Shown here in pieces: positions 5,517 through 59,698 of a stretch of 64,000 nucleotides of DNA (within the stretch, counting starts at the first letter, position 1; the number at the start of each line of letters is the position of its first letter). The translations under genes and the position numbers were made by a program. Source of the stretch: Sminthopsis crassicaudata. Lineage: Eukaryota. Under the pieces are notes generated by a model, which saw only the letters and a program-made list of their open reading frames with translations, was not told the origin of the DNA and did no database searches. The stretch lies in NCBI RefSeq assembly GCF_048593235.1, contig NC_133620.1, forward strand, positions 294,515,765 to 294,579,764, in the 5' to 3' direction.

Positions 5517-6651
5517 GTACATTACCTGCAGCGCCCCATTGCCCTCTGGTGTGGCCTGAATCATTCCCTCGTGTTGAGCCAGAGCTCGGATTTCAGCAAG
5601 GAGCTGCTGGGTTGTGGCTGTGGAGCTGGAGGTCGGCTCCCTGGCTGGCCCAAGGGGAGCGCCTCCTTCGTCAAGCTCCATGTCAAGGTCGGGATCATGG
5701 TGGGGGAAGCAGAGGGGGATTTTGAGATCAGGGATCAAGAAAGTACGGGTCAAGATAGATAACAAGAAAGTAGGCTTTTTTGATTTCTACCCTCCCTGCC
5801 CCAAGTGGTATACATGCACACATAACTCTTATTTCTTGATCCCTTTTCTATTGTATTCCATTTGTTATGGGGGCCCTACCCAATAATCCTCATTCTTCCC
5901 TGGTCCCTCCCCCACGCCTATTTAGTTTCTCCTATTTAGTTGACTCTGTAGGAAAATGAAGCAGACTTCCCAAAGTCCAGGCCTTTCACCTTCCCTTCCA
6001 AAACTCCAGCCCTATCCCAGGACTTCTTAAACTTTTTTTCACTCGCGATCCCTTTTCACCCGAGAAATTTGTACGTGACAAGTATATAAAATAGAATACA
6101 GTTCAAACATTTACTGATAACAAATCATAATTTCTCGACCCTTTACATTCAATTACAAGACCCTATATGAGGTCATAAACCAGTTTTAAGAAGCTGGCCC
6201 CTATTATCATCATCCTCCTCCACACACAGAGTCATCTTCCCTAGTATCTCTTCTAGCCTCAGATGCCTACCATGTTCTCTCTACTTAGGTCCCTCTTTGT
6301 GCTTGCTCTCTTTGCTCCACGAGAGAATGCCTCTACATGCTCTCCAGCCATGACATTGAACGCCGCCCCACTTACCGTGACCTACCAGCCAGCAGGGCCA
6401 CAGGGACTTCAGAGCCCACTGTGGGGACGGGGACATCCCAGGATCCTGGGGGGGCAGCCCGAGCCTGTGAAGAGTATCTGAGCCAGATTCACAGCTGTCC
6501 CACCCTGCAGGACCGGATGGAGAAGATGAAGGAGATTGTGGGCTGGATGCCTCTGCTAGCTGCACAGAAGGATTTCTTCTGGGAAGCACTGGACATGCTG
6601 CAGAGGGCTGCTGGGGGAAGTGGCCCAGGACCCACACCCCTTGAAAGCTGA
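5517..6651 (+). CDS. FBXO24: F-box only protein 24, last two coding exons (5517-5687 and 6289-6651); upstream exons lie before the window
   Basis: Exon 5517-5687 (cag|GTA...AAG|gt, 171 nt) gives VHYLQRPIALWCGLNHSLVLSQSSDFSKELLGCGCGAGGRLPGWPKGSASFVKLHVK. Exon 6289-6651 gives VPLCACSLCSTRECLYMLSSHDIE...EEYLSQIHSCPTLQDRMEKMKEIVGWMPLLAAQKDFFWEALDMLQRA...PLES*. Both match the remembered human FBXO24 C-terminus, and the position upstream of PCOLCE is syntenic. Confidence 0.93.
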
Positions 6652-6881
6652 CCCCCTTTATTCCCCCAAAAGGAAGGGGAGAGACTGGCCAGGGGCCAGG
6701 CCAGGTCAGAGAAGAGCTGAAGCGTGTACTATATATATGTGAGAGATTTGGGGAAGGGGGAGGGAACAGGAGACACGCACTGGGTCGGGACGGGGTTGTT
6801 TTGTAAAATTGTTGGGGGGATTTCCCAGGAGGGGCCCCCAACCTGGGCATCATGGACAAAAGAAATTTGATGGATGGATAC

Positions 6882-6887
6882 AATAAA
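6882..6887 (+). terminator. Candidate FBXO24 polyadenylation signal
   Basis: First AATAAA downstream of the FBXO24 stop, about 230 nt away. Confidence 0.5.
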
Positions 6888-7931
6888 AGAAGCTGCAGCA
6901 GAGCCCTGGATACTTGGGTCCTAGGAGGGGAATAGTAATGACTGTTTCCTTGGATGCCCATGGGAAATAAGGGCTCAAAGAGGAGAAAGCAGGGAACCTG
7001 AGAATAGAATGCTTGAAGCTTAGGAAGATCATCTAAGGGAAGGTAGGAGACCTGGTCAGCAGAGATGGTCAGAGGAGGTGGCTTATTTTTTCTTCAACTC
7101 TACCTATGCCACAGCAAGCACCTTTCTAAGATCTAGATGGTAGGGAAAATGCTATTCCTTTGAGGTTCTACTCTATATTCTAAAACACTCATCATCTGAT
7201 TCCCCCATTAGATCCTTTATCTTTTTGCCCCAAAGTCTCCTGTCTGCTCACATTAATTTTAATATCCATCTATCTCACACCCATTGTTCCTCAGATTCTA
7301 TCACCATATACTCAGGCTATCTTAACTTTTTTGTCATTCTCAAATATATAATCTTTCATATAGTACTTTCTTCCCACTCTTGTGTAATTTTCTGTCTCCT
7401 AATATTCAACTTGTCTGGTGGTGGTGGAGCTATTTACCTATCCCTGACTTGGACTGGAGAGCCCCATTCCTGGGACCAAGGAATAGAAATGGGGGCAGGG
7501 AAAAAAGGAACAGAAAATCGGAGTAAGTAGAATTAAGAGCTAGTATGGGATGAAGTCAGATGGAACTATGAGGCAGGAAGGAGTCCCAAATAGGAACTGA
7601 ATGGGGGAGTCCTCAAAGAACAACATGAGTTTGTGGTAAAATAAGAGATTTGGATCTTGGCCAACAGCTAGGGTGCTTCCACTTCGTCTCTCCACCCCAG
7701 TCACTTAGGTTAAGTCAATATTTGTGTGTACTGGACCTGAGAGGCCCCCAGACTTGGCTCTTATTTTTTCACATCCCTGTCTTCCTTCCCTTCCCCCATT
7801 CCTCTTCCTAATTCGTTCAGTCCCCACGCCCACACACTCAAAGCCAACCCATCTGGCTTTGATTATCCTGTTGCTGCTGGACTCAGCCGCTGCCTCTGTT
7901 TCAGGGACCCCGACATCTCTTCCCCCTAGCC

Positions 7932-10900
7932 ATGCTGCCTCTTATCCCACTCTTCGTTCTGGGGCCTTTTTTTACTTCCTTCACCCTGCTATCCCTCACC
8001 CAGGCCCAGGGAGCTCCTGCCCAGAGCCCCAACTACACCAGGTAGGTCTATTTCCACTCTTAATGTACCCTTCCCAATGTCCACAGAATCCAATAAAGGA
8101 ACTCTGCTTTATGGATTTTATATTGCCGGGAAGCCATTAGGTTTTTTTTTTTTTTCCCCGTCTCACCCCTTAACTCCACACACACACTTTGACACCCCCA
8201 TCCTATTTGGCTATTACTTATCCTAAGTGCTCTTTCGTCTTGTTTTGGCTCTCTGGTTCTTTTAAATTTAGTTTCCCATTTGAAATTTCCCTCCTCTCCA
8301 CAGAGCCTTTTGTCTTCTACTTCTTTTTCTCTATCCTTCAACCCCTTATTCCAATTAATGTGACCTGAAAGGAGCAACCTCACTTTTAGAGGATTGGAAC
8401 TTAAGTATTTAAGAGGACTTTTGAAGGGGGATGGGTGGGTTAGAGGGTCAGGAGGAATTGATACCCAAATCCCAGACTTCAGCAGAAGCTGAGACAAGTG
8501 TGGTAGTTAAGGGGAGTTTGATGGCTGGATTGAGATATTGTTGCTTCCTCTCCCCTTAAATCTTATCCCTTCGTTTTAGCAGACTTGTGGCTATATCCAC
8601 ACATCTGGTGCTAGTTAAGTCAGCTGCTAGGCAGGGTAAAGGGAAAGAATTCCAAGAATTCCAGCCTTCTAGCCAGGGTAGGGGTGAAGGACCTTGGGGA
8701 ATGGGAGTAGAAAGGATATTGGGAATAGCTAGTCAAAACTATTTCCTCTGCTTCCTATCCCAGTTGGCTGTAATGCCATTTGCTTTGCTCATTTGCCAAA
8801 CTTTTTACCCATTTCTAGAAAAAACTCTAGTATTATCACCTCTCCTTTTGCAACCTTTCTCCTGCATCTGAGTTTCATCCCCATTTCTTTGTATACTAGT
8901 ACCTCAAAGCTTGACCTTTCCATTCTTAATACATTATTTTTGTTCTGCCTACTCTCACTGATACTGATTACCCACCCCCTTCATTTATGTCTGACCAACC
9001 CCCTAGACCCGTGTTCCTGTGTGGAGGGGATGTGACCGGGGAATCAGGCTACGTGGCAAGTGAGGGCTTCCCCAATCACTATCCCCCTAACAAGGAATGC
9101 ATCTGGACAATCATGGTGAGTGGTCCCCTCTGTTTTGTGCTCTGCCTTTTCAACCATTTCCTACCTTCTGGAACCAGGACAGCTTCTCTTGGGATCAAGT
9201 CCTCCCCTAAGACTTAAAGATCCTTCCTCCAGTCAGGTTCCAGAAAATCCCCATCCTCTCTGCTAATCATCAAACTAGATCTGATTACTGCCTTCTCCCT
9301 ACCCACTCACTCCAAAGATGATGCTTTATTTTGATATATCCTATTAAATCTAGGCCTTAGCACTCCATTAGCATATAATTCCTCATTTAGGATTCTGGAG
9401 TCCTTTATTTTTCTGAAGCTTTTGAATTTATAGAAGTAATGGCTCTTCTTTGCCTTGTTGCTAAAGAATACTCCTGGGCAACAAGATCAAGGGAGTAAAA
9501 ACAAGCCTCATCCCTATCAAAAATGAAGTCTCACTGGCCAAAGAAAGACATCTAGGGATCCCTTCTCTATATCTTGGACCCTGGGACCCCTATATTACCT
9601 TGGCTTAACTGCTAGAGAGGGAAATTTTTGCTTCTTTCCCTGAACTACACCTAATCTGTTCCATCTCCCAATATGACTCCACATAGCTAAGGACAAAGCT
9701 CCTCAATAATGGTGAAGTTGGGAATATAGGTATGAAAAGAAATTAAATCTTGAAGTGTAACCCTTGTCCTCTTTGTCCTTTTCTTTTCTTCCCTAGGTCC
9801 CTGAGGGTCAGACTGTTTTTCTCTCCTTCCGAGTCTTTGACTTGGAATTGGATCCCTCCTGCCGCTATGATTCCCTAGAGATTTTTGCTGGGGCAGGGAC
9901 ATCAGGCCAGCGTCTTGGACATTTCTGTGGGACCTTCAGGCCAGGGCCTGTGGTTGCCCCTGGCAACCAGGTGACACTGAGGATGAGGGCTGATGAGGGG
10001 ACAGGAGGACGAGGCTTCCTGCTGTGGTACAGTGGGCGGGCTACCAATGGCAATGGTGAGATTACCCCTCTCCTCACTTCTCACTCATGGGTATAACACA
10101 TGCCCTGCCACCCTCTATCTTGGGTTCTACCAAAATCCAAAGAGAAAGACAGGTCCATCTCCATGAGATACAAACCCTTCTCCCAAGAGGCTGAAGCCTA
10201 TCCCTGCTAGTATATCCCATACCATATAGAGGGCCTTGTCTCCAGGTTATTATTCTTCTTAATCCCCATCCTCCACCTTGCATCCTCCCCTCTCCTTTTG
10301 TCCTTACTAACTGCTCCTTCAGTCCCACCTCCCCATCTTTTCTATCCTTCCTTTCCCTCCCTCCCACCACCCCCCTCTTCTAGGCACCCCCCCAGGTGCA
10401 AGGCGGAAATGGGGCGCAGACCCACGGGTGGACTGGGCGGCGTGGGGTTACTGGGATGGTGAGTAATTTCCTTAGCCCTTTATGTCCTCTGCAGTTAGAA
10501 CTCACCTAGCTGGGGAGGGGAGGGGGGGAAAGAGAATGAAGAGGTGGGAAGAGGGAGAGAATGGAGAGAATGGAGATGAGGAAGCAGATGAATATATTCC
10601 CCTTGTCCTAAATTATCACTCCCCCCAAACCCAGTCCTAGGATTCTGACCCTATCATCCTTTTCCCATAGCAGAAAACAACCTTTAAAATAAATGTGAGG
10701 ACCACTTGGATCAGAGAGAAGCATTAGAAAAGGCATTCTCCCATTTGAGATGAGAGAGCCCTCAAATGTGTGAAACTTCCAACTGAGAAGACTAAAAAAA
10801 ATCTGGAAGAATTCTGTTAAATTTGGTGTATAAGACTTCCCTTACAGAAGGAAAAAGTGGGAATAAGAGAGAGGAGGAGATTATGGGGAGAGGGAGAGTT

Positions 10901-13084
10901 TGGGAAGTGGGCGAGTTTGAGAAGTGAACCGAGAATACTCCAGCTAATTCCTATCATTTTCTAAGGATGGAGAAGTAGGGAAAATTTGAGGGTGCCTTTA
11001 TGTTGAAAGCCAGGTCCCTACTTTTCTTTACTCTCTTTTTGCTAATTTTCCCCCTCTCCTTATCTCCCCCCAACCCTCCTCCATTCAGGAATCCATATAT
11101 TTGATCTTCCTCCTCCCCCCCCATCCTTGAACACTAGTTTTCCCTCTCCCTGCCCCCACCCCATATCTATCTCTCTATCCAGAGCATCAGTTCTGTGGGG
11201 GTCGGCTGGAGAAGCCCCAAGGTACCCTGACCACACCCAACTGGCCTGAATCTGATTATCCTCCTGGAGTCAGCTGTTCCTGGCTCATCATTGCTCCCCC
11301 AGAACAGGTAACAACATTCCCTAGGCTCTTCATGGGGAACTCAAACATCTGCCTCTCTGCTATATTAATTAGAAACCCAAGTATCTAGTTAGCCAGTTAA
11401 TTTCTATTCTACTAGGTGATTTCTCTGACTTTTGGGAAATTTGACCTGGAGCCAGACACTTATTGCCGATATGATTCAGTCAGCATTTTCAATGGAGCAC
11501 AAAGTGATGATTCAAAAAGAGTGGGGAAATATTGTGGGGACACTGCCCCAAGGTGAGTGGGTAAGGACATTAGAAGAGCAAGTTTTAGTGGCTGGGATGA
11601 AGTGGGGGGGGGGGTGTTGGATCAAATAGAAAGGACCATGACTTAAAAAGAGGGTTGAATGGGTTGGGTAAGTTTAGAAGGAAGAGAGGGAGAAAAGAGA
11701 AGTGGTGGAACAGAGGCTTTTGGAGAAAACTTTGAGGGCATTATAGCTTGGGCACTTCCTTCCCCTGATAACCTACTAACTTCCCTTCCCTCAGTTCCAT
11801 CACTTCAGAAGGAAATGAACTCCTGGTCCAGTTTGTCTCTGATCTCAGTGTCACTGCTGATGGATTTTTTGCCTCCTATAAAGCCCAACCCAGAGGAGGT
11901 GGGAAGGAGGGCATTATTTCCATGGGGAACAACCAACCAGTCCCAGCTTCTCCACAACCACGACCTAAAGTCAAACCACCTACCAAACCCCAGACCCCAG
12001 TCCAAGAGAACTTAAAACCTACCCTTGCCACAGAGTCCGGTAAGCATGATTAAGTTAAATACCAGAGTTTAGGGAGCAGGGGTTTGGGGGATAAGGAAGG
12101 TGTATAAAACAGGGATCTGGGGTCTCGATACTGGACACATAAACACAACTTAGATCTTGGAGGATTGGGAAAGAATGAAGCAAGGCTGGGTGTGGGATGA
12201 GGAAATCATAAGGCTGATTTCCTCCATAGATACTCCTAAGACTCCTTGCCCAAAACAATGCAGAAGAACAGGCACTCTACAAAGCAACTTCTGTGCCAGT
12301 GACTTTGGTAAGCAAGCCAAGAATGAACTCCCTCATACCTCCTGACGGGAGCCTTCTCCTGCTCTTTGCAAGACTTTGTCTTCCTGCCCTCCTCAATACC
12401 TTTCTCTTTCACCTTTCTCCCCCTCTTCTCCCCCCTCCCCTCTCTCCCGTTTTCCATTGCCAATCCTTATATCCTCCCTATCCAAGCTTTATTTCCTACT
12501 ACAAAATAGCATCCTAACCTTTGGTCTATCATGTTAACTTGAGCTATTTTAGTCATACTGCCCACCATATGGAGCCTCCTAATGAGTCCTCCCTATAAAT
12601 TTTATTTTTCTAATCTTTTCCTGTCTTTTTTTTAAAGTGGTGACAGGGACAGTGAAGTCAATGGTTCGAGGTCCTGGGGAAGGCATCACTGTTACCATCA
12701 CCCTCACGGGTGTTTACAAGGCAGGGGCTCTTGGCCTATCTTCCACCTCCACTGGATCCCCACTTAAATTGTATGTACTCTGTCGGCAGTGTCCCCCAAT
12801 AAAGAAAGGTAAGCGAGCTTCTGGAAGAGCTGAATAAAGTATGGGTGGGGGATAACATATTGTGGGTTCCAAGAACAAACGGGAAGGAGACATAGAACCT
12901 CTTGCCTGATTCTCCAACTCTTCCTTTAGGGGCTAGTTACTTGCTGATGGGTAGTGTGGATGAAGAAGGAAGCGCAGTCCTCCACCCCAACAGTTTTGTG
13001 GTACTCTATCGACCAAACCAGGACCAGATCCTTACCAACATGAGCAAAAAGAAGTGTCCGTCCCAGCTTCCAGCCAGGGCCTGA
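7932..13084 (+). CDS. PCOLCE: Procollagen C-endopeptidase enhancer 1 (signal peptide-CUB1-CUB2-linker-NTR), 462 aa; exons 7932-8041, 9007-9115, 9797-10055, 11183-11307, 11416-11552, 11795-12039, 12230-12307, 12638-12808, 12930-13084
   Basis: All junctions are GT-AG and phase-compatible; exons sum to 1389 nt. Translation [71 protein letters not shown]...[29 protein letters not shown]...[18 protein letters not shown]...[11 protein letters not shown] matches PCPE1. Confidence 0.97.
10384..10458 (+). CDS. PCOLCE: Putative alternative cassette exon of PCOLCE (75 nt, phase 1-1, [25 protein letters not shown])
   Basis: Long pyrimidine tract ending ctcttctag, strong donor G|GTGAGT, length a multiple of 3, stop-free in the exon 3/exon 4 frame, CpG-dense relative to the surrounding intron. 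No expression evidence available. Confidence 0.65.
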
Positions 13085-13138
13085 GATGATCTGCACCAAA
13101 TTATTACCTAATTTCTTCCTTACCTCCAAACTTTCTCT

Positions 13139-13154
13139 AATAAATACAAATAAA
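13139..13154 (+). terminator. PCOLCE polyadenylation signals
   Basis: Two AATAAA hexamers at 13139-13144 and 13149-13154, about 55-70 nt after the stop. Confidence 0.75.
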
Positions 13155-13429
13155 GTTCACCTAGACAAAAAAAAGAATCAGAACTTGTCAGGGTGAAGAC
13201 TGGGGGGAAGGAGAGGAGGGCAAAGGGGGAGGAAGTCAAGGTCGTCTTAGTTTGCTGAAACTTAAACCCCCCTCCCCCCAAAAAAAAGGTTAACTCTTGA
13301 TTGGTTTTCATCCCTTCTCCACCAGAGTAAGCCTTCCAGATCAACTCAGCTGGATTCAGGACTTAGGCTTAGGGGGAAAGGAAGACAGTGTGGGGACCTC
13401 AGCAAGAAGCCTAGTTAGGGGAAACCTAA

Positions 13430-14560
13430 AAGAAAAGGAAGACGGGCCAGGCGCCCCCTCTCCGTGGAGATGCCCCAGCTGGGTCAGGTTCAGTCAATGC
13501 AGGGGCCGAATGTCACTTCCTAGAACTCCACTCGATCCCAGCAGGACAGTCCAAGACCTACGTTCCCCGTCCAGCAGACGCCAATTGAATGATTGCCACG
13601 TACGTGTGTTTGAGCCAATGAAAAGTGCCCTTAGGCGGGACGTAGAGATTCGGAATTTTCTATTAACCACTAGGCATAGTTCTGTGACCCGGAGGGACGG
13701 GACGAACAGCGCTGAATGGCCCTCTGGGCTGGTAGGCGGCTTTCTTAGCCAATGTGAACCAGTAAGGTTGAACCCGGAACTAAAGCTGGATATTTTTGAA
13801 CCCTAGTCTTAGGTCGGAGTCTGACAATACAGACAGAATTGGAGACTCTGGGGTGAATCTCCCGGAAAAACAAAAGCGTCACTGACGGCTCCAAATTGTC
13901 AATCCACTAGCCGGACAGTACAAAAGGGTATAACCTGAGACATTTTAGAGAGAAGGGGCGAGGATGAGATTCTTGAGCCAATGTCTAAGAAGGGAGGGGG
14001 GATTGTCTGTGGCGAGACATTATAGGTAAGACTTAGGAGCCGAAGAAGCGAGGCCTCTGCAGAAGGGCGTCTCGCGCATTTGCCAAACTCCATTAATCAG
14101 AAGGCGCATCCTCCTCCTGTAGTTTCCACCCATTCCTGACATTGGTCCTTGAACTCGTCCCTCCGCTAGCATCCCAGTTTGGGCGTTCCCTAGCGTTCCC
14201 CAATCAGAATATTTGATCCTTAAACCCGCCCCCTTTCTATCAGTTCTATCTGGATGGGGGCCTCCCGGAACCTCTGTTGTTCAAATTTCGTGCCTGCAGT
14301 AGTTTGGGGTTGAGCCCAAGGCGTTCCTCTCCCTTCCCCGGGCGCCTGGTCCCGGTCCTGGTCTGCCGGACTGGGCTTTCCAACGTGCCTGTGGAGAGGC
14401 CCCTCCGGGCCTGCGCTTCCCTTGTGAGGGTGGGGCGGGCGGCAATACTGCGCATGCAGGCACTAGGAGCCTACTCTCCTGCTTGGAAACGTAGCCCCAG
14501 GGTTTGGTTGAGCTGGGATCTGTTTTAGCGCGCCATCTTTGCTGACAACAGTCTTGGGGA
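13430..14560. promoter_or_regulatory. CpG-island promoter at the MOSPD3 position
   Basis: CpG-rich block in CpG-poor DNA. Motifs: AGCCAAT at 13613, 13747 and 13976; CCAATCA at 14200; CCGGAA ETS-like cores; GC box GGGGCGGGC near 14432; NRF1-like TGCGCATGCA at 14449-14458; YY1-like CGCCATCTTT at 14531-14540. Confidence 0.75.
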
Positions 14561-16560
14561 CAGAAGGATGTGGGGACTCTTAGTTCCCAATCGACTTTTG
14601 AAGTATACATTCCATCGCCTCTTAAGGTAACCCTATCGGTTCCTCCTGTGTGACAGGGAAGCAATTGTGTCAAGCTCCTGTCACTAGACTCTTTGGAAGG
14701 CTCTAGAGCTTCTCCACAGCCATCATTTGTCATTTTCTCTAATCCCCGTTTCTCCCCTCAACTCCTCTTGAAAGATATAGTATATCATCCGGTCCTCATC
14801 TCTAGCATTACCATGGGGGGGAGGGGAGAGGGACCTAGGGTTGAAACCGGAGCCTGTGTGGTGAGCATATAGGGATATGCTCAAGGCCACATACTTGATC
14901 AGCACCTACTATCCCTATCAAACCTACCAGTTTCTTGGCAGCGAGGGTGTACATGGAGATGCTGGAAGCAGGTGGGGTTGGAGAAAGGGTCAATATGAAA
15001 GTTACTTCACAGACCATCTGACCTAGACCACAGGCTGATGAATTAATCAGGAAACATTAAGGTCCTGCCATTTACCAGAAGAGGTAGGCCCTGCCCCCAA
15101 GAGGTGAGTAATGATGCTAACGTGCTAGGCCCTTCCCTCTTTTCTCTGACTGCTCTACTCTCTAACCCTCAACTGCTTGTCTCAGAATTCTGTCAGTCAC
15201 AAAGGTCTCATTTCCAAAATATATAGAGAACTGACCCTAATTTATAAGAAATCAAACCATTCTCCAATTGATAAATGGTCAAAGGAAATGAACAGACAAT
15301 TCTCAGATGATGAAATTAAAACTATTTCCACTCATGAAAGAGTGTTCCAAATCACTATTGATCAGAGAAATGCAAATTAAGACAACTCTGAGATACCATT
15401 ACACACCTGTCAGATTGGCTAAGATGACAGGAACAAATAATGATGAATGTTGGAGGGGTTGTGGGAAAACTGGGACACTGATACATTGTTGGTGGAGTTG
15501 TGAAAGAATCCAACCATTCTGGAGAGCAATCTGGAATTATGCCCAAAAAGTTATCAAACTGTGCATACCCTTTGACCCAGCAGCGCTACTACTGGGATTA
15601 TATTCCAAGGAAATACTAAAGAGCGGAAAGGGACCTGTGTGTGCCAAAATGTTTGTGGCAGCTCTTTTTGTAGTAGCTAGAAACTGGAAGATGAATGGAT
15701 GTCCATCAATTGGAGAATGGTTGGGTAAATTATGGTATATGAAGGTTATGGAATATTATTGTTCTGTAAGAAATGACCAGCAGGAGGAATACAGAGAGGC
15801 TTGGAGAGACTTACATCAACTGTTGCTGAGTGAAATGAACAGAACCAGAAGATCACTATACAGTTCAACAACAATACTGTATGAAGATGTATTCTGATGG
15901 AAGTGGATTTCTTCAACATAAAGAAGATCCAACTCACTTCCAGCTGATCAATGATGGACAGAAATAACTACACCCAGAGAAAAGGAACACTGGGAAATGA
16001 ATGTAAATTGTTAGCACTACACTACTGTCTATCTACCCAGGTTACTTATACCTTCGGAATCTAATACTTAATGTGCAACAAGAAAATGGTATTTACACAC
16101 ACATATTGTATCTGGGTTATATTGTAACATATGTAAAATGTATGGGATTACCTGTCATCGGTGGGAGGGAGTGGAGGGAGGGGGGATAATTTGGAAAAAT
16201 GAATACAAGGGATAATATTATATATAAAAAAATTACTCATTTACTCATGCATATATACTGTGGAAAAAAATTCTAAATAAAATAAAAAAAAATAAAGAAT
16301 TCTGTCAGTCAACGAGCCCCTTGGAGTAGGATCTCTGGGACCCAGTGCCTCATTTGGGGAGAAGAGAAAGGGAAGAACGGGTGGAACTGCAAACAGTGAA
16401 TATCCCAGACATCTTCAGCCCCAGTATCTATCTTCTCTTACCTTCTGACAGTCTATATGTGACCTACTTCTACTCCTTTTTCTGCATGGACAATTCAGTC
16501 CCTTCTCCCCCCACATCCTACATGATTCTCTGGGACAAATATTAGTGTCTTGAATGCTAG
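14254..16560 (+). pseudogene. MOSPD3: Decayed MOSPD3 (motile sperm domain-containing 3) locus
   Basis: Syntenic slot. 14346-14363 encodes LVPVLV (human VVPVLV). 14411-14428 ctgcgcttcccttgtgag matches the exon 1 end (human TALRFR) but with TGA, and is out of frame with LVPVLV. 16409-16553 holds LLLLLFLHGQFSPFSPHILHDSLGQILVS* (human [29 protein letters not shown]) with upstream frameshifts. Exon 2 and 3 remnants (about 14530-14610 and 14880-15103) are only weakly recognisable. Human sequence recalled from memory. Confidence 0.72.
15200..16295 (+). mobile_element. 5'-truncated young L1 (ORF2 C-terminus + 3'UTR + A-tail) with 16-bp TSD
   Basis: TSD AGAATTCTGTCAGTCA at 15184-15199 and 16296-16311. 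Translation KGLISKIYREL...[19 protein letters not shown]...[16 protein letters not shown] is the L1 ORF2 C-terminal cysteine-rich region. Confidence 0.95.
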
Positions 16561-17289
16561 TAATAGCCTCTCAATATCATTGAGTTGGGATTGGAAAGGG
16601 TGGGCAGGACACTGAATCCTTGCAAGGAACTGACTTCTGATGCCCTTTCCTTTTTTTTGCCTCTCTTTCCTGCTCTTTTTCTCGGTGGCTTTCTTTGAAA
16701 TGTAGATCTCCCCTTCTATTTTGGGTGTAGAGTTTGAGAACAATCAGAGACATTGACATTTTGATTTATTCATTCAGACATGTACTAGGTATTTCCTCCC
16801 CAACATCTCTTGAGCCTGATAATTTTTAATAATTTTACAGAATGAATAATAAAAATATAAAAAGTCAATGTGAAGAAAATCTTATTTCCATTCCTATACT
16901 TACCCTTTTTCTTCTTTCTAGTGAAATATAGTCTGCCTTTCAGTGTCCCTGAGATCTAGATGTTTAATGACTCTTAGAATGAGCTCCTATTTGGGAGAGT
17001 CAGTTGACCTAAGCTGAATTACTTGTATGATTTTAGCAAGTTCCTCTACTTTATTAATCTCAGTTTTCTTCTATATAAAGAGAAAGTTAAGCAACAACAA
17101 AAAGCCAAACAACATAGTTTAAAATCAGCAAAATATTTTTAAGTGGCTTTCCCTAATTACCTTGTCAGCAAGTGACAGAAGCAGGACAATTTACTTGAGC
17201 CCAACTTTAGCTATGTTACATAATTGCCCTTAACCCTAAAATTCTGCCTTCAGCTCTCTGCTATTCAGGTAGAGCTTTCATCTATAATC

Positions 17290-18062
17290 CAGCTTCTTAA
17301 ACTGTGGGTTGTGATTCTGTTCCATGGGTCTCATAACTGAATGTGTGAGGGCTAGAAATTATGATTATCAGTAAATGTCTGATTTGGAGATCTATTTTAT
17401 ATAGTTATGATGGGAGTGAACCTTTTAACTGTGTTCCCTTTAATCTGTAAAAGAAAGATGACTGGGGTCTCAAGATCTCCCCTGGGAAAAGTATACCTTT
17501 CCCAGACAATGCCCTCCTCCCCAAGTTAAGTGGTCTTATTCAGTTGGAGATCTCAGCCTAGTAGTCCTATTGAGAAGGTTCCAAGATAAGTAATCTCTTT
17601 TCAATTGGAAATATAAGCCTGGGGCATTGAAGCCCAAGCCTCAGACTACTAATAAAAGACAATGCTGAACCTCAAATCTTTGCAGAAGTCTGAAACAGGA
17701 ATTTGCTTTGCCAAGGAAGCTCTCTTCTTGGCAAGGCTGCCTGCCAGGACTTTTACCCACTGTGAAGATATTCTCTTCTCAGTGTTAACCTTTATTTCCC
17801 TAACAGGACCTTTTACCCACCAAGAAGTCTTTCTTCCTAGCAAAGCTGGATTCTCAGTGCCAATAAAAATCCCTTTTGTCACACACACTTTTTGGGTTTG
17901 TGAATTTTTTCAAATTGGACCTGGGCTGACCAGAGAGGATTCCCCACCCCAATTCTCTCACCTTTTTACTACCACTATAACCTCATCAGTTTTATGTCCA
18001 GGGTCATGTAAAAATTTCTTGTACACAAAGGGGTGAAGAATAGAAAAGGTTTTAAGAAGCTG
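17290..18062. mobile_element. Non-autonomous DNA transposon (hAT-like) with a nested LTR-like insert at about 17408-17960
   Basis: Terminal inverted repeat CAGCTTCTTAAA (17290-17301) / TTTAAGAAGCTG (18051-18062). The insert has TG...CA ends, TATA-like and AATAAA motifs. No clean TSD seen. Confidence 0.55.
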
Positions 18063-18335
18063 TAATAAAGAATATTAACTTTAATATGAGAAACCTGCTT
18101 TTTAATAGGTAAAATATTATGTGAATCCCCACATAGCAAGGACATTTTATTCATATCTGTTAATTGAGATAAAGCAAATGACATATTATAGTTTCAGTAG
18201 ACATTTTCAGAGGAACCAGTATAGTATATTGAAAAGAATAAAAAGATCACTGAACTTGAAGTTCAGAGAGATCTGACATAAAATCCCAGCAACTGCTTGA
18301 CTGACTTGTACCAATTAATGTTTCTGAGCATCAGT

Positions 18336-18903
18336 TTGCTCATCTGTGAAATAGATAATTACCTAATAATTAGGTTGGAAGGAAACTGCCTTTAAAACTT
18401 TTTAATGCCTTAAAAACTTTTAAAGTGTAAAACTTTACACTATGTAAATGTAAGTTAATTTCTCTTGTTATAAACTTGACAAATATCTGGAAAAGTATAG
18501 ATACAAAGAACAGAAAAAGAGGTTTGAATATGAAATTTTGAATTCTTAAATGTCTATTAAATTTGATATGGAAGTCCTAACAAGTCCTGTTTGTCTGTGT
18601 CCCTTTCCAAATGGTTTTGTGATTTCTTTTTGCTCATCTGTGAAACAAAGATAACTACCTTTATTAGGTTGGAAGGAAAATACCTTTAAAACTTTGAAAC
18701 ACTATGTAAATGTAAGTTAATCTCTCTTGTAATAAACTTGACAAATATCTAGAAAAATATAGATACAAAGAACAGAAAAAGAGGTTTGAATATGAAACTC
18801 TGAATTTCTTAAATTTCTATTAAATTTGACATGGAAGTCCTAACTAGTCCTGTTTGTTTGTGTCCCCTTCTAAATGGTTTTGTGATTTCTTTTGCATATT
18901 TTA
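18336..18903. repeat. Tandem duplication, period about 294 nt, two diverged copies running into an assembly gap
   Basis: ttgctcatctgtgaaa...attaggttggaaggaaa...tatgtaaatgtaagttaat...ggttttgtgatttctttt starts at 18336 and again at 18630. Confidence 0.9.
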
Positions 18904-20899: not shown

Positions 20900-21600
20900 T
20901 TTTTTTTTTTTTTGGAAGTACTTATAAAAGACTTCTTTTTTCCAATTTTTTTTCCAAAACATGTATACATGGATAATTTTCAATATTCATCCTTACATCC
21001 TTATTTTTATAAGATTTTTGATTTCCATTTTTTTCTCTTTCCCTCCCCACACAAGATAGCAGTAAGCAATATGATATCTGTTAGGTTATATATGTAAAAT
21101 AATATTAAACATATTTCCACATTAGTAGTGTTACAAAAGAAGAATCAGGACAAAAGGAGAAAACCCCATGAAAGGAAAAACAACAAAAAAGTGAAATAGT
21201 ATGCTTCATTTGTTCAGGTTCCATATTTCTTTGGATATGGCTATCATTTTCCATCATGAGTCTCTTGAAATTGTCTTAAGATCATTGTATTGCTGAGAAG
21301 AGCTAATTCTTTCAAAACTGATCATCGAACAATGGTACTGTTATTATGTATGATGTTCTCCTGATTCTGTTCATTTACCTCAGCATCAATTTATATAAGT
21401 CTTTTCCAGCTTTTTCTGAAATCTGCTTAACATTTCTTATAGAACCATAGTATTATATTCTATTCATATACCATAATTTGTTCAGCCATTTTCCAATTGA
21501 TGAGCATCCCCTTGATGTCTAATTCTTTGCCACCACAAAGAGAGCTTGCTTATATATGTGAGTCCTTTCCTCTCTCTCTTTTTTTTTTTAATAATCTCTT
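20900..21600 (-). mobile_element. Older L1 3' end fragment
   Basis: Poly-T head followed by the reverse of a typical marsupial L1 3'UTR/ORF2 end (gataattttcaatattcatcc..., ccaattgatgagcatcccc...gccaccacaaagagagct). Confidence 0.6.
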
Positions 21601-31827: not shown

Positions 31828-33229
31828 ATTGGGAAAACTGGAAATTAGTATGGCAGAAATTAGATATGGATCCACACTTAACACCATATACCAAGATAAG
31901 ATCAAAATGGGTCCGTGATTTAGGCATAAAGAATGAGATAATAAATAGATTAGAGGAACAGAGAATAGTTTACCTCTCAGACCTGTGGAGGAGGAAGGAA
32001 TTTATGACCAGAGGAGAACTAGAGATCATTATCGATCAGAAAATAGAAGATTTTGATTACATCAAATTAAAAGTTTCTGTACAAACAATACTAATGCAAA
32101 CAAGACTAAAAGGGAAATAACAAATTGGGAAAATATTTTTACAGTTAAAGGTTCTGATAAAGGTCTCCTTTTCAAAATATATAGAGAACTGACCCTAATT
32201 TATAAGAAATCAAACCATTCTCCAATTGATAAATGGTCAAAGGATATGAACAGACAATTCTCAGATGATGAAATTGAAACTATATCCACTCATATGAAAG
32301 AGTGTTCCAAATCACTACTGATCAGAGAAATGCAAATTAAGACAGCTCTGAGATACCACTACACACCTGTCAGATTGGCTAAGATGACAGGAACAAATAA
32401 TGATGAATGTTGGAGGGGATGTGGGAAAACTGGGACACTGATACATTGTTGGTGGAGTTGTGAAAGAATCCGGCCATTCTGGAGAGCAATTTGGAACTAT
32501 GCCCAAAAAGTTATCAAACTGTGCATACCCTTTGACCCAGCATTGCTGCTATTGGGCTTATATCCCAAAGAAATACTAAAGAACAGAAAGGGACCTGTAT
32601 GTGCCAAAATGTTTGTGGCAGCTCTTTTTGTAGAAACTGGAAGATGAATGGATGTCCATCAATTGGAGAATGGTTGGGTAAATTATTGTATATGAATGTT
32701 ATGGAATATTATTGTTCTGTAAGAAATGACCAGCAGGAGGAATACAGAGAGGCTAGGAGAGACTTACATCAACTGATGCTGAGTGAAATGAGCAGAACCA
32801 GAAGATCACTGTACACTTCAACAACAATACTGTATAAAGATGTATTCTGATGGAAGTAGATATCTTCAACATAAAGAAGATCCAACTCACTTCCAGTTGA
32901 TCAATGATGGACAGAAATAACTACACCCAGAGAAGGAACCCTGGGAAGTGAATGTAAATTGTTAGCACTACTGTCTATCTACCCAGGTTACTCATACATT
33001 CGGAATCTAATACTTAATATGCAACAAGAAAATGGTATTTACACACATATATTCTATCTAGGTTATATTGTAACATATGTAAAATGTATGGGATTGCGTG
33101 TCATCAAGGGGAGGGAGTAAAGGGAGGGAGGGGATAATTTGGAAAAATGAATACAAGGGATAATGTTATTTTAAAAAATTACTCATGCATATGTACTGTG
33201 AAAAAAAATTATAAGTAAAAAAAATAAAA
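31828..33229 (+). mobile_element. 5'-truncated young L1 with 17-bp TSD, just downstream of and antisense to TFR2
   Basis: TSD TAAAATCCTCAGTCATC at 31811-31827 and 33230-33246. ORF2 C-terminus MDPHLTPYTKIRSKWV... and [19 protein letters not shown]. Closely similar to the copy at 15200-16295. Confidence 0.95.
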
Positions 33230-36200
33230 TAAAATCCTCAGTCATCGAATAAGTCCATGGAATTAAACGTAGAAATGCTTCCTAAGAAAAGGAATGAAGG
33301 TAGGTAGGAGAAAAGAGAGCTTGTTGGGAGAGCTCTAAGCAAGCCAGGAAAGTGATTTCTCTGGAAAGGCAGGACTATCCTCAGATTCTCTCCATAGGAA
33401 AAGTATTGGCAGACCTGGACCTCCAAGCTCAAGAGAAGGTCCAGTGCACAAAAACAGGATTTCAAGTTGGAAATTGAATCCTCTTCCTCTGATTTTTTTG
33501 GGGGGGTTGGAGGAAGCCAAGAACTTGGGAAAGGGAAAGTGGACATAAGAATGATTGAACAAATAGACCCTCTTCAAAACGAGGTCTTGAATATGTTAGG
33601 GAGCCAGCCCCAGCCCTCTTACCCCTCAGGAGCTGCAGGTGCTCGAGCAAGGGCCTCAGAGTGTGGTCCCCTTGACCAAGGAAGATATGGCGGAATGGGT
33701 AGATTGCTGGTGACATACTGGGATAGGAAGTAGAATTCTATCTGCCACAAGGGCATAGAGAATGATCAGAAAGAAAGCAGAGGATCACTTCTCTTCTTGA
33801 ACCTTACTTTAACCACCCCATCAATATCACAGCTTTAGCCCCTCTCAGGCATTCCTAGTCATTTTCTCTTTGCCTAGGCCTAGTTTTCCCAACTTCCTCC
33901 AATAATTCCCCATAACTCTTTATCTTTCCCAAGTTCCCCTGCTTTTTTTAGAATTTAGAGCTGGAAAAAACCATTGATCATCTAGCAGAATCCTTTTTTT
34001 TTTTTTTTTTTTTTTTTAAATGAAGAAGCCAGAGAGGTAAAAAGATTTGCCTGGTGTCACATAAGGTAATCAAATACTTCTCATTTCCCCACTTGTTTCT
34101 ATAACTACCCTGACCCTCTCTCCCATTTTCCTCATTAACACTTCCCAATTCCATTTAATGTCCCCCTCCACATCCTTAAATGATCTGAGCTTTCCAGGGC
34201 AACCCTCATTAACCATAGCTCAACTCCTATTACTCTTCTAAACCAGTTTTTCCCTGAATGGCTGCAAAATCCAATGGCCTTTTCTCATTCCTTATCCTCT
34301 TTGAATTCCATTGGTTTCTTTGGCATTATTCTTTCCTGATTTTCTTTAATTCTTTAATTTTCTCCTGCCTAAGGGTAGGTGTCTTTCCCTGATTCTTTTT
34401 TCTTAATATTCTCTCTACTTCCATAATTTAATCCCTGTCAAATCTGGATGTTCCCCTAATCTCAATTTTTAATCCTTGACTCTCTTTCTCTTTGTTCATT
34501 CTTCTCTAGTGATCCCAGGTGAGAGAGAAGAAAGATATTCAAGTAGGGAAAGGAGAAAGAATAAAAGAATTGGAGAAAAGAGATGGGAAAGGGGAGGGGA
34601 GATAAAAGCAGGAAACAAAACAGGGAAGTGATAGTGGTGGGATTGGAGTTAGGCACAATAAAGGAAATGAAGATAGGAAAAAGTCAGAGGAAGAGACTTG
34701 GGATGTAAGACACAAAAGCAGAGAAGAGAAGCATTAACAGCAAAAGTTGTCAAAGAATAATACTTCTAACTGAGGTTGCTGGGGTTGAGGCTGCCTATTT
34801 TAGTAATTAGAATGAGGCTAACATGTGAATCTGACTCACTCTCATGATTCGGATATTGTACATTCGAATCAATCTTTCATTGCTCTCTTCTGAACTGTGG
34901 ATCTCCTTTTGCAGCTTCTCAGCTGACCAGATGTAGTCTCCTCGTGCTGAGTAGATCCACTGCAGAGTCAGGCCCGGGCCTAGAGAGTAGAAAGGGGCTA
35001 AAAATAGTGCCAGAGTGCTAAGGAAGTTGGAAGTATAATTTAGGGCCTTTAAGAAATAGAGAAGGTAAAGGCAGGGGATCAGGACACAAGTTCAGAAAAA
35101 TGAAAATAAATAGAAATAGGGGCAGAACCAAGTCCCAAAGGGACTGAAAGTTGGAAATATAGGATCCAGTGAAGAAATCTCAACAATGGCCAGGGACTAA
35201 TATCTAACCTTGAGATCTCCAGAAAACTCATTGAGTCTGTCAATGTGCTTCAAGATGACATCACCATAGCAGCCAAAGTCTAAGGGTAGTAGGTGATCAT
35301 GGCTGAGCCGGATGAGTAGTTGACCTCTTTCACAGGGACACAGAGGGTAAGTAGGGATGGAGTGGGACTGAGAAGAAGAGAAAAATAGAAAAGACAGATG
35401 TTTTCTGTCTTTGGGTCTTGTCATCCTTGTGACCAGGAAGAAATCAAGGCTTTTTTTTTCCCTCCCTGACTTTCCCTTACTCACCCTAGCAGCTGTGCAG
35501 TGATGTTGGCACTGATGGGTTGTACTGGGATACTAGGGAGGCCAGAGGATTCCACAGGTGGGAACTGGAGGGGAAGCCAGGTGTATAGGGGTCCCCTGTT
35601 CCCAAGTGAACCTGTTGGGGGAGTTGAGGCATATCTGATAAGTATAGAAACACAACTGAGCATCTCCCTATTTATTGATAATATATTTATATTTATATAA
35701 TAATATATTATTATATTATATTTATATAGCAATATATTTATATTTATCTCCCTGTTCCCATTCCCCATCCAGTCCTCCTCCTCCTCCATAAATCATAGAA
35801 TCTAGAGAGCATTGGACCTCATTCCTGGTCTTCCTTTCTGATGATGTTAGGGTCCTGAAAAGCAAGAATGATCCTTTGATTCCTAGGTATCCCATACACA
35901 GCTGTGTGGTTAGACAGCCTTAGCTTCCTGTGAGTATCTAGGTGTATGTCAGCAGGATCTGGGTAAATGAGGACACCCAGAGCCCCAAAGGCCTCAGCAT
36001 TCAATACCTAGTATAAAAATAAGGCAACATAATTTTCCTAAATCAGCTTGCATCCAAATTCCCAGTCCTCAGACTCTTTTGAATCCTTGCTATATCCCCA
36101 TGTTTTCCATTTCTGAACCTCAAGAATCCACATCCTGTTTCCTGTACTCCTCATATTTATTTCTCAAAAAAATCTATTTCCAGTTTCTCTATATAGTTCC

Positions 36201-50565: not shown

Positions 50566-59698
<9,133 letters not shown>

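Follow-up and report, generated by a model that had tools for sequence, protein, structure and literature searches.

MOSPD3 (motile sperm domain-containing protein 3) is a VAP-family protein of the endoplasmic reticulum (ER) membrane that carries an MSP domain, and it belongs to the five human tethers of this family by which ER contact sites are built; its gene is expected within the block FBXO24-PCOLCE-[MOSPD3]-TFR2. An example of a unitary pseudogene that extends over a whole clade is GULO in haplorhine primates. Here we describe the MOSPD3 slot in a stretch of 64,000 nucleotides (nt) from the genome of the dunnart Sminthopsis crassicaudata (contig NC_133620.1). This whole stretch is referred to as the window and its positions are used unless another locus is named. 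We conclude, with a probability of about 0.9, that positions 14298-16705 of the plus strand are a unitary pseudogene of MOSPD3, which was most likely disabled in the stem lineage of marsupials.

MOSPD3 and MOSPD1 are the FFNT-binding members of the VAP family (PMC7610837), and MOSPD1 binds the same FFNT motifs as MOSPD3 and can pair with it (PMC7610837; bioRxiv 10.64898/2026.01.04.697522). A full redundancy between both proteins is nevertheless no given, because a 2026 preprint reports that in human cells the recruitment of the lipid-transfer protein ATG2A to the ER in autophagy needs MOSPD3 and not MOSPD1, while ATG2B can use either of them (10.64898/2026.01.04.697522). In addition, a 2004 mouse study, according to its citation in a review (PMC7610837), tied Mospd3 to the development of the right ventricle. 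In full-text literature searches no paper was found that combines MOSPD3 with "marsupial" or "opossum", and none that deals with MOSPD3 as a lost gene. The event described here is of an ordinary type, a clade-wide unitary gene loss, and is apparently unreported.

Remnants of five MOSPD3 exons in the dunnart

Remnants of all five coding exons of MOSPD3 are traceable in the dunnart, in order and on the plus strand, about 1.2 kb 3' of PCOLCE. The reference for the exon layout was the armadillo gene (protein P0295, locus L007), whose coding exons 1 to 5 lie at 6001-6205, 6442-6517, 6715-6944, 7489-7653 and 7745-7776 of that locus. For comparison, the PCOLCE loci with 10 kb downstream were taken from tammar wallaby (L002), wombat (L003), the opossum Monodelphis (L004), the monito Dromiciops (L005) and bilby (L006), which together with the dunnart cover the orders Dasyuromorphia, Peramelemorphia, Diprotodontia, Microbiotheria and Didelphimorphia. 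The dunnart PCOLCE locus L001 (GCA_048593235.1, CM109184.1) agrees with the window at 18,850 of 18,850 compared positions and, as it belongs to the same assembly, was excluded from the comparison. The remnants were placed by exon-by-exon alignment to armadillo and five marsupials, and a long interspersed nuclear element (LINE) inserted in the dunnart was excluded from the multi-species alignment. A global alignment that included armadillo was set aside, since the armadillo exons were misplaced in it, and the exon blocks were used instead. The following remnants were delimited in the window:

14298..14428, plus strand: MOSPD3 exon 1 remnant, 131 nt against 205 nt in armadillo
14524..14597, plus strand: MOSPD3 exon 2 remnant, 74 nt against 76 nt in armadillo
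14776..14944, plus strand: MOSPD3 exon 3 remnant, 169 nt against 230 nt in armadillo
16409..16553, plus strand: MOSPD3 exon 4 remnant (transmembrane (TM) helix 1, loop and start of TM helix 2), 145 nt against 165 nt in armadillo
16674..16705, plus strand: MOSPD3 exon 5 remnant, 32 nt, equal to the armadillo length

None of these five remnants is translatable or spliceable, and the coding-equivalent bases of the relic amount to 157 nt fewer than those of a functional MOSPD3. The original prediction, made by a model from the letters of the window alone, had placed the relic at 14254-16560. Its true extent is from 14298 to about 16705, and exons 2, 3 and 5 had been overlooked.

The aligned start of exon 1 (14298-14300) reads AGT and not ATG. 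The original prediction had drawn attention to an ATG at 14254-14256, in frame to a TGA at 14311-14313; both are present, but the aligned start comes only some 44 nt downstream of this ATG, which is not the ancestral one. When compared with armadillo, exon 1 displays gaps of 43, 5 and 27 nt together with a 1-nt insertion. The segment LVPVLV had been correctly located at 14346-14363 and aligns with the VVPVLV codons of armadillo exon 1. The deletion of about 32 nt said to follow it has the right total (32 nt) but is divided into two gaps, one of 5 nt after 14367 and the other of 27 nt after 14404. Likewise, the final full codon of the exon had been rightly read as TGA (14425-14427) in the place of an arginine, the armadillo codon being CGA (Arg68). 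At this position CGA is kept in wombat and monito, and TGA is also found in bilby.

In exon 2 the AG of the acceptor is lost, TT stands at 14598-14599 in the place of the donor GT, and the remnant carries a 2-nt deletion and a TAG at both 14526-14528 and 14581-14583. Exon 3 displays gaps of 1, 28, 43 (24+18+1) and 1 nt, a 12-nt insertion, and stops at the aligned codons 14870-14872 and 14896-14898. The TM exon, exon 4, accumulates indels of -9, +1, -4, +2 and -8 nt, ends in ...HILHDSLGQILVS followed by TGA (16551-16553), and shows AT at 16554-16555 where the donor GT is expected. This frameshifted remnant with its terminal stop had been predicted at exactly these coordinates, and its indels are confirmed by the alignment. 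The longest stop-free piece over it is 34 amino acids (aa) long, and four changes of frame are needed before the TGA is reached. Finally, the acceptor AG of exon 5 is changed to GC, and its aligned reading is FFSVAFFEM against LLTMVFLRT in armadillo, each followed by a stop, which in the dunnart is a TAG (16703-16705) at the ancestral stop position.

Across the dunnart relic there are at least ten indels not divisible by three and at least six stops at aligned codon positions, starting at 14425, 14526, 14581, 14870, 14896 and 16551. The splice sites that are lost are the acceptor and the donor of exon 2, the donor of exon 4 and the acceptor of exon 5.

Homology of the relic and its decay across marsupials

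The reference proteins were reached through the neighboring gene. A PCOLCE exon of the window, compared with a representative library, led to the full-length PCOLCE P0031, a word search with P0031 returned the PCOLCE of eight marsupials together with the fusion models P0231 and P0232, and the MOSPD3 part of the latter (P0232:405-598) was used as query for the MOSPD3 family search. The human residues used in the original prediction agree with the actual eutherian MOSPD3 (P0232:405-598, P0279 and P0295).

Nine MOSPD3 queries (eutherian, echidna, amphibian and coelacanth) were compared by tblastn with the flank after PCOLCE. For the TM exon the best E values were 5e-12 in wombat, 3e-6 in monito, 4.5e-5 in opossum, 1e-3 in dunnart and 8e-3 in tammar. 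This homology check had been named beforehand as a possible refutation, and it gave a match at the TM exon of the dunnart, where echidna MOSPD3 reached E = 0.001 in a database of 56 kb. Further matches were obtained for exon 1 in wombat (4.5e-5) and for pieces of exon 3 in opossum, wombat and tammar, the orthologous pieces in these three species reading ...DIPSIGKPPA... against ...KDIPSVLRAPA... in eutherians. The relic is therefore detected by tblastn in four of the five other marsupials. In the bilby flank no MOSPD3 match was obtained by tblastn with any of the nine queries; this locus is collinear, yet more decayed. In fact, when wombat is compared by blastn with each of the other five marsupials, bilby included, collinearity extends over the whole flank, and the weak remnants of the dunnart are therefore orthologous to the strong ones of wombat. 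A 9-nt insertion with a stop after ...AAY, shared by wombat and monito in the tblastn matches, was considered as a further lesion and rejected, being a read-through into the conserved donor of intron 4.

Domain and motif searches were less informative in the dunnart. No MSP domain (Pfam PF00635) was found in 70 stop-free plus-strand pieces of 13800-18900, LINE excluded, a search of low power, and the pieces bearing the exons of the relic likewise gave no Motile_Sperm match. In controls, the domain was recovered in the whole MOSPD3 of armadillo (E = 3e-14) and echidna (E = 1.8e-11), and among single intact armadillo exons exon 2 alone scores (E = 0.002). The missing match in the dunnart is consequently weak evidence, since single intact exons mostly fail too. 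A six-frame scan of the window with the two motifs given in the original prediction placed the best matches exactly at the relic, and the 15-mer among them was equally matched in 6 of 100 shuffled windows, so that this result is suggestive only.

In Sminthopsis, tammar, wombat, Monodelphis and Dromiciops the 10 kb that follow PCOLCE contain no called gene, which agrees with the anticipation that annotation would show the loss only as a missing gene. In bilby the sole call after PCOLCE is TFR2, starting 8.6 kb downstream (called as an 805-aa product, L006 23925-25293). Among the best 120 of 189 MOSPD3 homologues obtained with P0232:405-598 there is no marsupial, and the same protein database contains the PCOLCE of eleven marsupial species. 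These 120 comprise about a hundred eutherian clusters, echidna, amphibians, coelacanth and bichir, with identities to the query of 54% for echidna (P0372) and 48-52% for amphibians. A marsupial orthologue, at 60-70% identity, would outrank echidna and thus fall among the matches listed. MOSPD3 proteins are annotated in eutherians, echidna, amphibians, coelacanth and bichir, so the ancestor possessed the gene. The same best 120 of 189 homologues include no bird or reptile; sauropsids may be without MOSPD3, or theirs may be too diverged for a word search.

The lesions were mapped across the marsupial orders, and several of them are common to more than one order. In exon 1, 11 nt are missing in wombat, tammar and monito within the ...GPRQLLT... 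codons, which are kept in echidna and non-mammals, and wombat, tammar and opossum share the deletion junction CCGTGACCCT. The site of the 11-nt loss falls within larger deletions in bilby and dunnart. At the exon 2 donor, wombat, tammar, monito, opossum and dunnart all have TT in the place of GT, and none of the six marsupials has an ATG at the aligned start. Other lesions are restricted: the last full codon of exon 1 has changed from CGA to TGA in dunnart and bilby only, and a 32-nt deletion in exon 3 is found in wombat and tammar. In tammar the exon 4 remnant is split by an insertion of about 545 nt (L002 17984-18527), and in opossum the exon 3 remnant is split by one of about 240 nt (L004 about 16960-17200); both are presumably repeats.

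Compared pairwise, the six marsupials show identities of 0.713 for the exon remnants, 0.730 for the intron remnants and 0.722 for the upstream 1 kb, and because the exon remnants are conserved no better than the introns there has been no coding constraint since these lineages split. From the shared lesions together with the neutral decay we infer one inactivation, before the split between Didelphimorphia and Australidelphia (about 80 million years ago) and after that between marsupials and placentals (about 160 million years ago). Most likely, a single event disabled MOSPD3 in the stem of the living marsupials, after the separation from placentals and before that of opossum and Australasian lineages. 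The relic would then have drifted neutrally and gained further lesions separately in each lineage, and to these later lesions would belong the LINE of the dunnart, the large deletions in bilby and dunnart, and the insertions in tammar and opossum.

The prediction of a MOSPD3 unitary pseudogene at this slot is thus borne out by synteny, homology, lesions and neutral exon decay. The loss had been called old, which agrees with a relic that carries shared disabling lesions and has decayed neutrally in five marsupial orders, and the reading as a unitary pseudogene with an old loss is supported. It had also been called lineage-specific, which holds if marsupials as a whole are meant but not if the dunnart or dasyurids only are, the relic being present in all five orders.

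The sequence around the relic

Three further features of the window border, overlap or interrupt the relic:

7932..13081, plus strand: PCOLCE, intact upstream neighbor, every coding exon found by tblastn with marsupial PCOLCE proteins
13000..14500, no strand assigned: stretch of moderate CpG richness across the former 5' end of MOSPD3, with a CpG observed/expected ratio of 0.46-0.49
15184..16311, plus strand: LINE 3'-end insertion in former intron 3, including its target-site duplications (element at 15200-16295), with an A-rich tail

Several PCOLCE exons of the window match the Sminthopsis crassicaudata protein P0239 at 100% identity, and the intact state of PCOLCE shows that the assembly is reliable here. 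A Trp-rich cassette, located in PCOLCE between the two CUB domains (window 10383-10469), is a 90% match to the tammar X1 isoform (P0216:160-188) and occurs likewise in X1 isoforms of eutherians, for instance P0031, the X1/X2 pairs differing by 25 aa; it is therefore an annotated alternative exon.

The original prediction regarded this slot as normally conserved, and this agrees with the read-through gene models P0231 and P0232 of sheep and deer, which join PCOLCE to MOSPD3 on one strand, so that both genes must be neighbors in that orientation, with MOSPD3 after PCOLCE. In armadillo, TFR2 (minus strand) comes after MOSPD3, and armadillo PCOLCE is absent from the 6 kb upstream of armadillo MOSPD3; the adjacency of PCOLCE and MOSPD3 consequently rests on the sheep and deer fusion models. 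In these two models (deer and a sheep hybrid) the fusion leaves out the final exon of PCOLCE and the beginning of MOSPD3, and they are probably annotation artefacts of read-through.

Across most of the window the CpG observed/expected ratio is 0.0-0.2, against the higher values at 13000-14500. This CpG-rich stretch is no more conserved among marsupials than its flanks, and a present role as promoter is a candidate only.

The LINE is 5'-truncated and is bounded by an exact target-site duplication of 16 bp, read directly from the sequence at 15184-15199 and 16296-16311. Other copies of it are found in the window at 32360-33232 (92% identity), 54696-54984 (75%) and 21347-21546 (73%). A Pfam search of the open reading frame piece at 15391-15894 gave no match, and therefore the insertion is identified as a repeat by its duplication, its A-rich tail and the existence of other copies. 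By blastn the insertion is restricted to the dunnart, the site being empty in wombat, tammar, monito, opossum and bilby.

Alternative explanations and comparison with known systems

Could the resemblance to MOSPD3 be fortuitous, so that no MOSPD3 relic ever existed at these coordinates? Taken alone, the similarity in the dunnart is weak, as seen in the E value of the TM exon, in the shuffled windows that match the 15-residue motif and in the missing MSP domain on the plus strand of 13800-18900. Nevertheless, the collinear wombat sequence reaches 5e-12 for the TM exon and 4.5e-5 for exon 1, all five exons align in order, and Pfam is weak on single exons in any case, which leaves a chance resemblance with a negligible probability. 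We give equally little credit to the idea that the gene is intact in the animal and that the lesions are errors of assembly or sequencing. PCOLCE is intact 1.2 kb away, the same decay is seen in five marsupial assemblies from different projects, and two DNA data sets from different studies each contain 0.92 of the sampled 31-mers of 13100-17400; moreover, dozens of lesions including exon-scale deletions do not form an error pattern. A recent loss, specific to the dunnart or to dasyurids, with a working MOSPD3 in other marsupials, might be suspected from the restricted lesions, namely the LINE in the dunnart only and the CGA to TGA change in dunnart and bilby only. It is extremely unlikely, since stops and frameshifts also interrupt the relics found at this place in opossum, monito, wombat and tammar, the bilby locus is collinear and more decayed, no MOSPD3 is called in the slot in any of these species, lesions cross orders, exons are not better conserved than introns, and the best 120 of 189 homologues hold no marsupial MOSPD3 protein.

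It may also be asked whether only the copy in the slot is dead while a functional MOSPD3, transposed or retro-copied, exists elsewhere in marsupial genomes. The search covered proteins and PCOLCE flanks, and an unannotated copy could escape it. However, the protein database includes unnamed proteins from public run assemblies, and no marsupial appears in the best 120 of 189 homologues though echidna and amphibians, at 54% and 48-52% identity, were found; we regard such a copy as very unlikely. A last possibility, compatible with the reading as a pseudogene, is that the relic no longer codes for a protein but persists as a non-coding transcript or regulatory element through its CpG-rich 5' region. 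In favor of it, the elevated CpG ratio persists at 13000-14500, and the runs X7-X10 contain 0.63-0.66 of the sampled words of 13100-17400, although their label as RNA is a guess and they may be DNA. If X7-X10 were truly RNA, the mostly non-genic stretch 13100-17400, which includes the relic, would be transcribed. Neither the relic nor the 1 kb upstream of it contains a block that exceeds its surroundings in conservation among marsupials, and a non-coding role seems unlikely.

Some points also weigh against a MOSPD3 pseudogene dating from the marsupial stem. The sample of orders leaves out Paucituberculata and Notoryctemorphia, and armadillo was the sole eutherian DNA used as intact reference. 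The marsupial relic is only 45-58% identical to armadillo, which makes the exact position of single gaps uncertain, and the 11 nt missing from exon 1 can be drawn as 3+8 or as 7+4. In the dunnart, single lesions rest on one assembly and on the presence of k-mers in sequencing data, and the reach of the search for a copy elsewhere, as described above, belongs here as well.

The loss of MOSPD3 once in the marsupial stem would make every living marsupial a natural null, in which heart development and autophagy presumably proceed through MOSPD1 or through changed FFNT partners, and we consider this scenario probable. MOSPD1, the X-linked paralogue, belongs to the same family and has the same preference for FFNT motifs but lies at a different locus, and we infer that it is the likely back-up for the lost gene. 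If the stem loss is real, a whole infraclass has lived without MOSPD3 for tens of millions of years and represents a natural experiment on the dispensability of this tether and on its redundancy with MOSPD1. It raises the questions of whether the FFNT motif is kept in ATG2A and other partners of marsupials, and whether marsupial MOSPD1 shows an altered constraint or expression.

When compared with the MOSPD3 of placentals and monotremes (armadillo P0295 and echidna P0372), the dunnart relic retains the slot and strand after PCOLCE, the layout in five coding exons, and recognizable residues in exon 1 (LVPVLV), in exon 3 and in the TM exon (LHxSLGQxLV). In contrast to the functional proteins, which have 220-235 aa and a Pfam MSP domain, the dunnart copy is devoid of an aligned start, of an open frame and of several splice sites. 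In relation to unitary pseudogenes of the GULO type it concerns another gene and another clade, and its exons are barely detectable in some lineages; both have in common a single-copy gene disabled in place, shared lesions and neutral decay.

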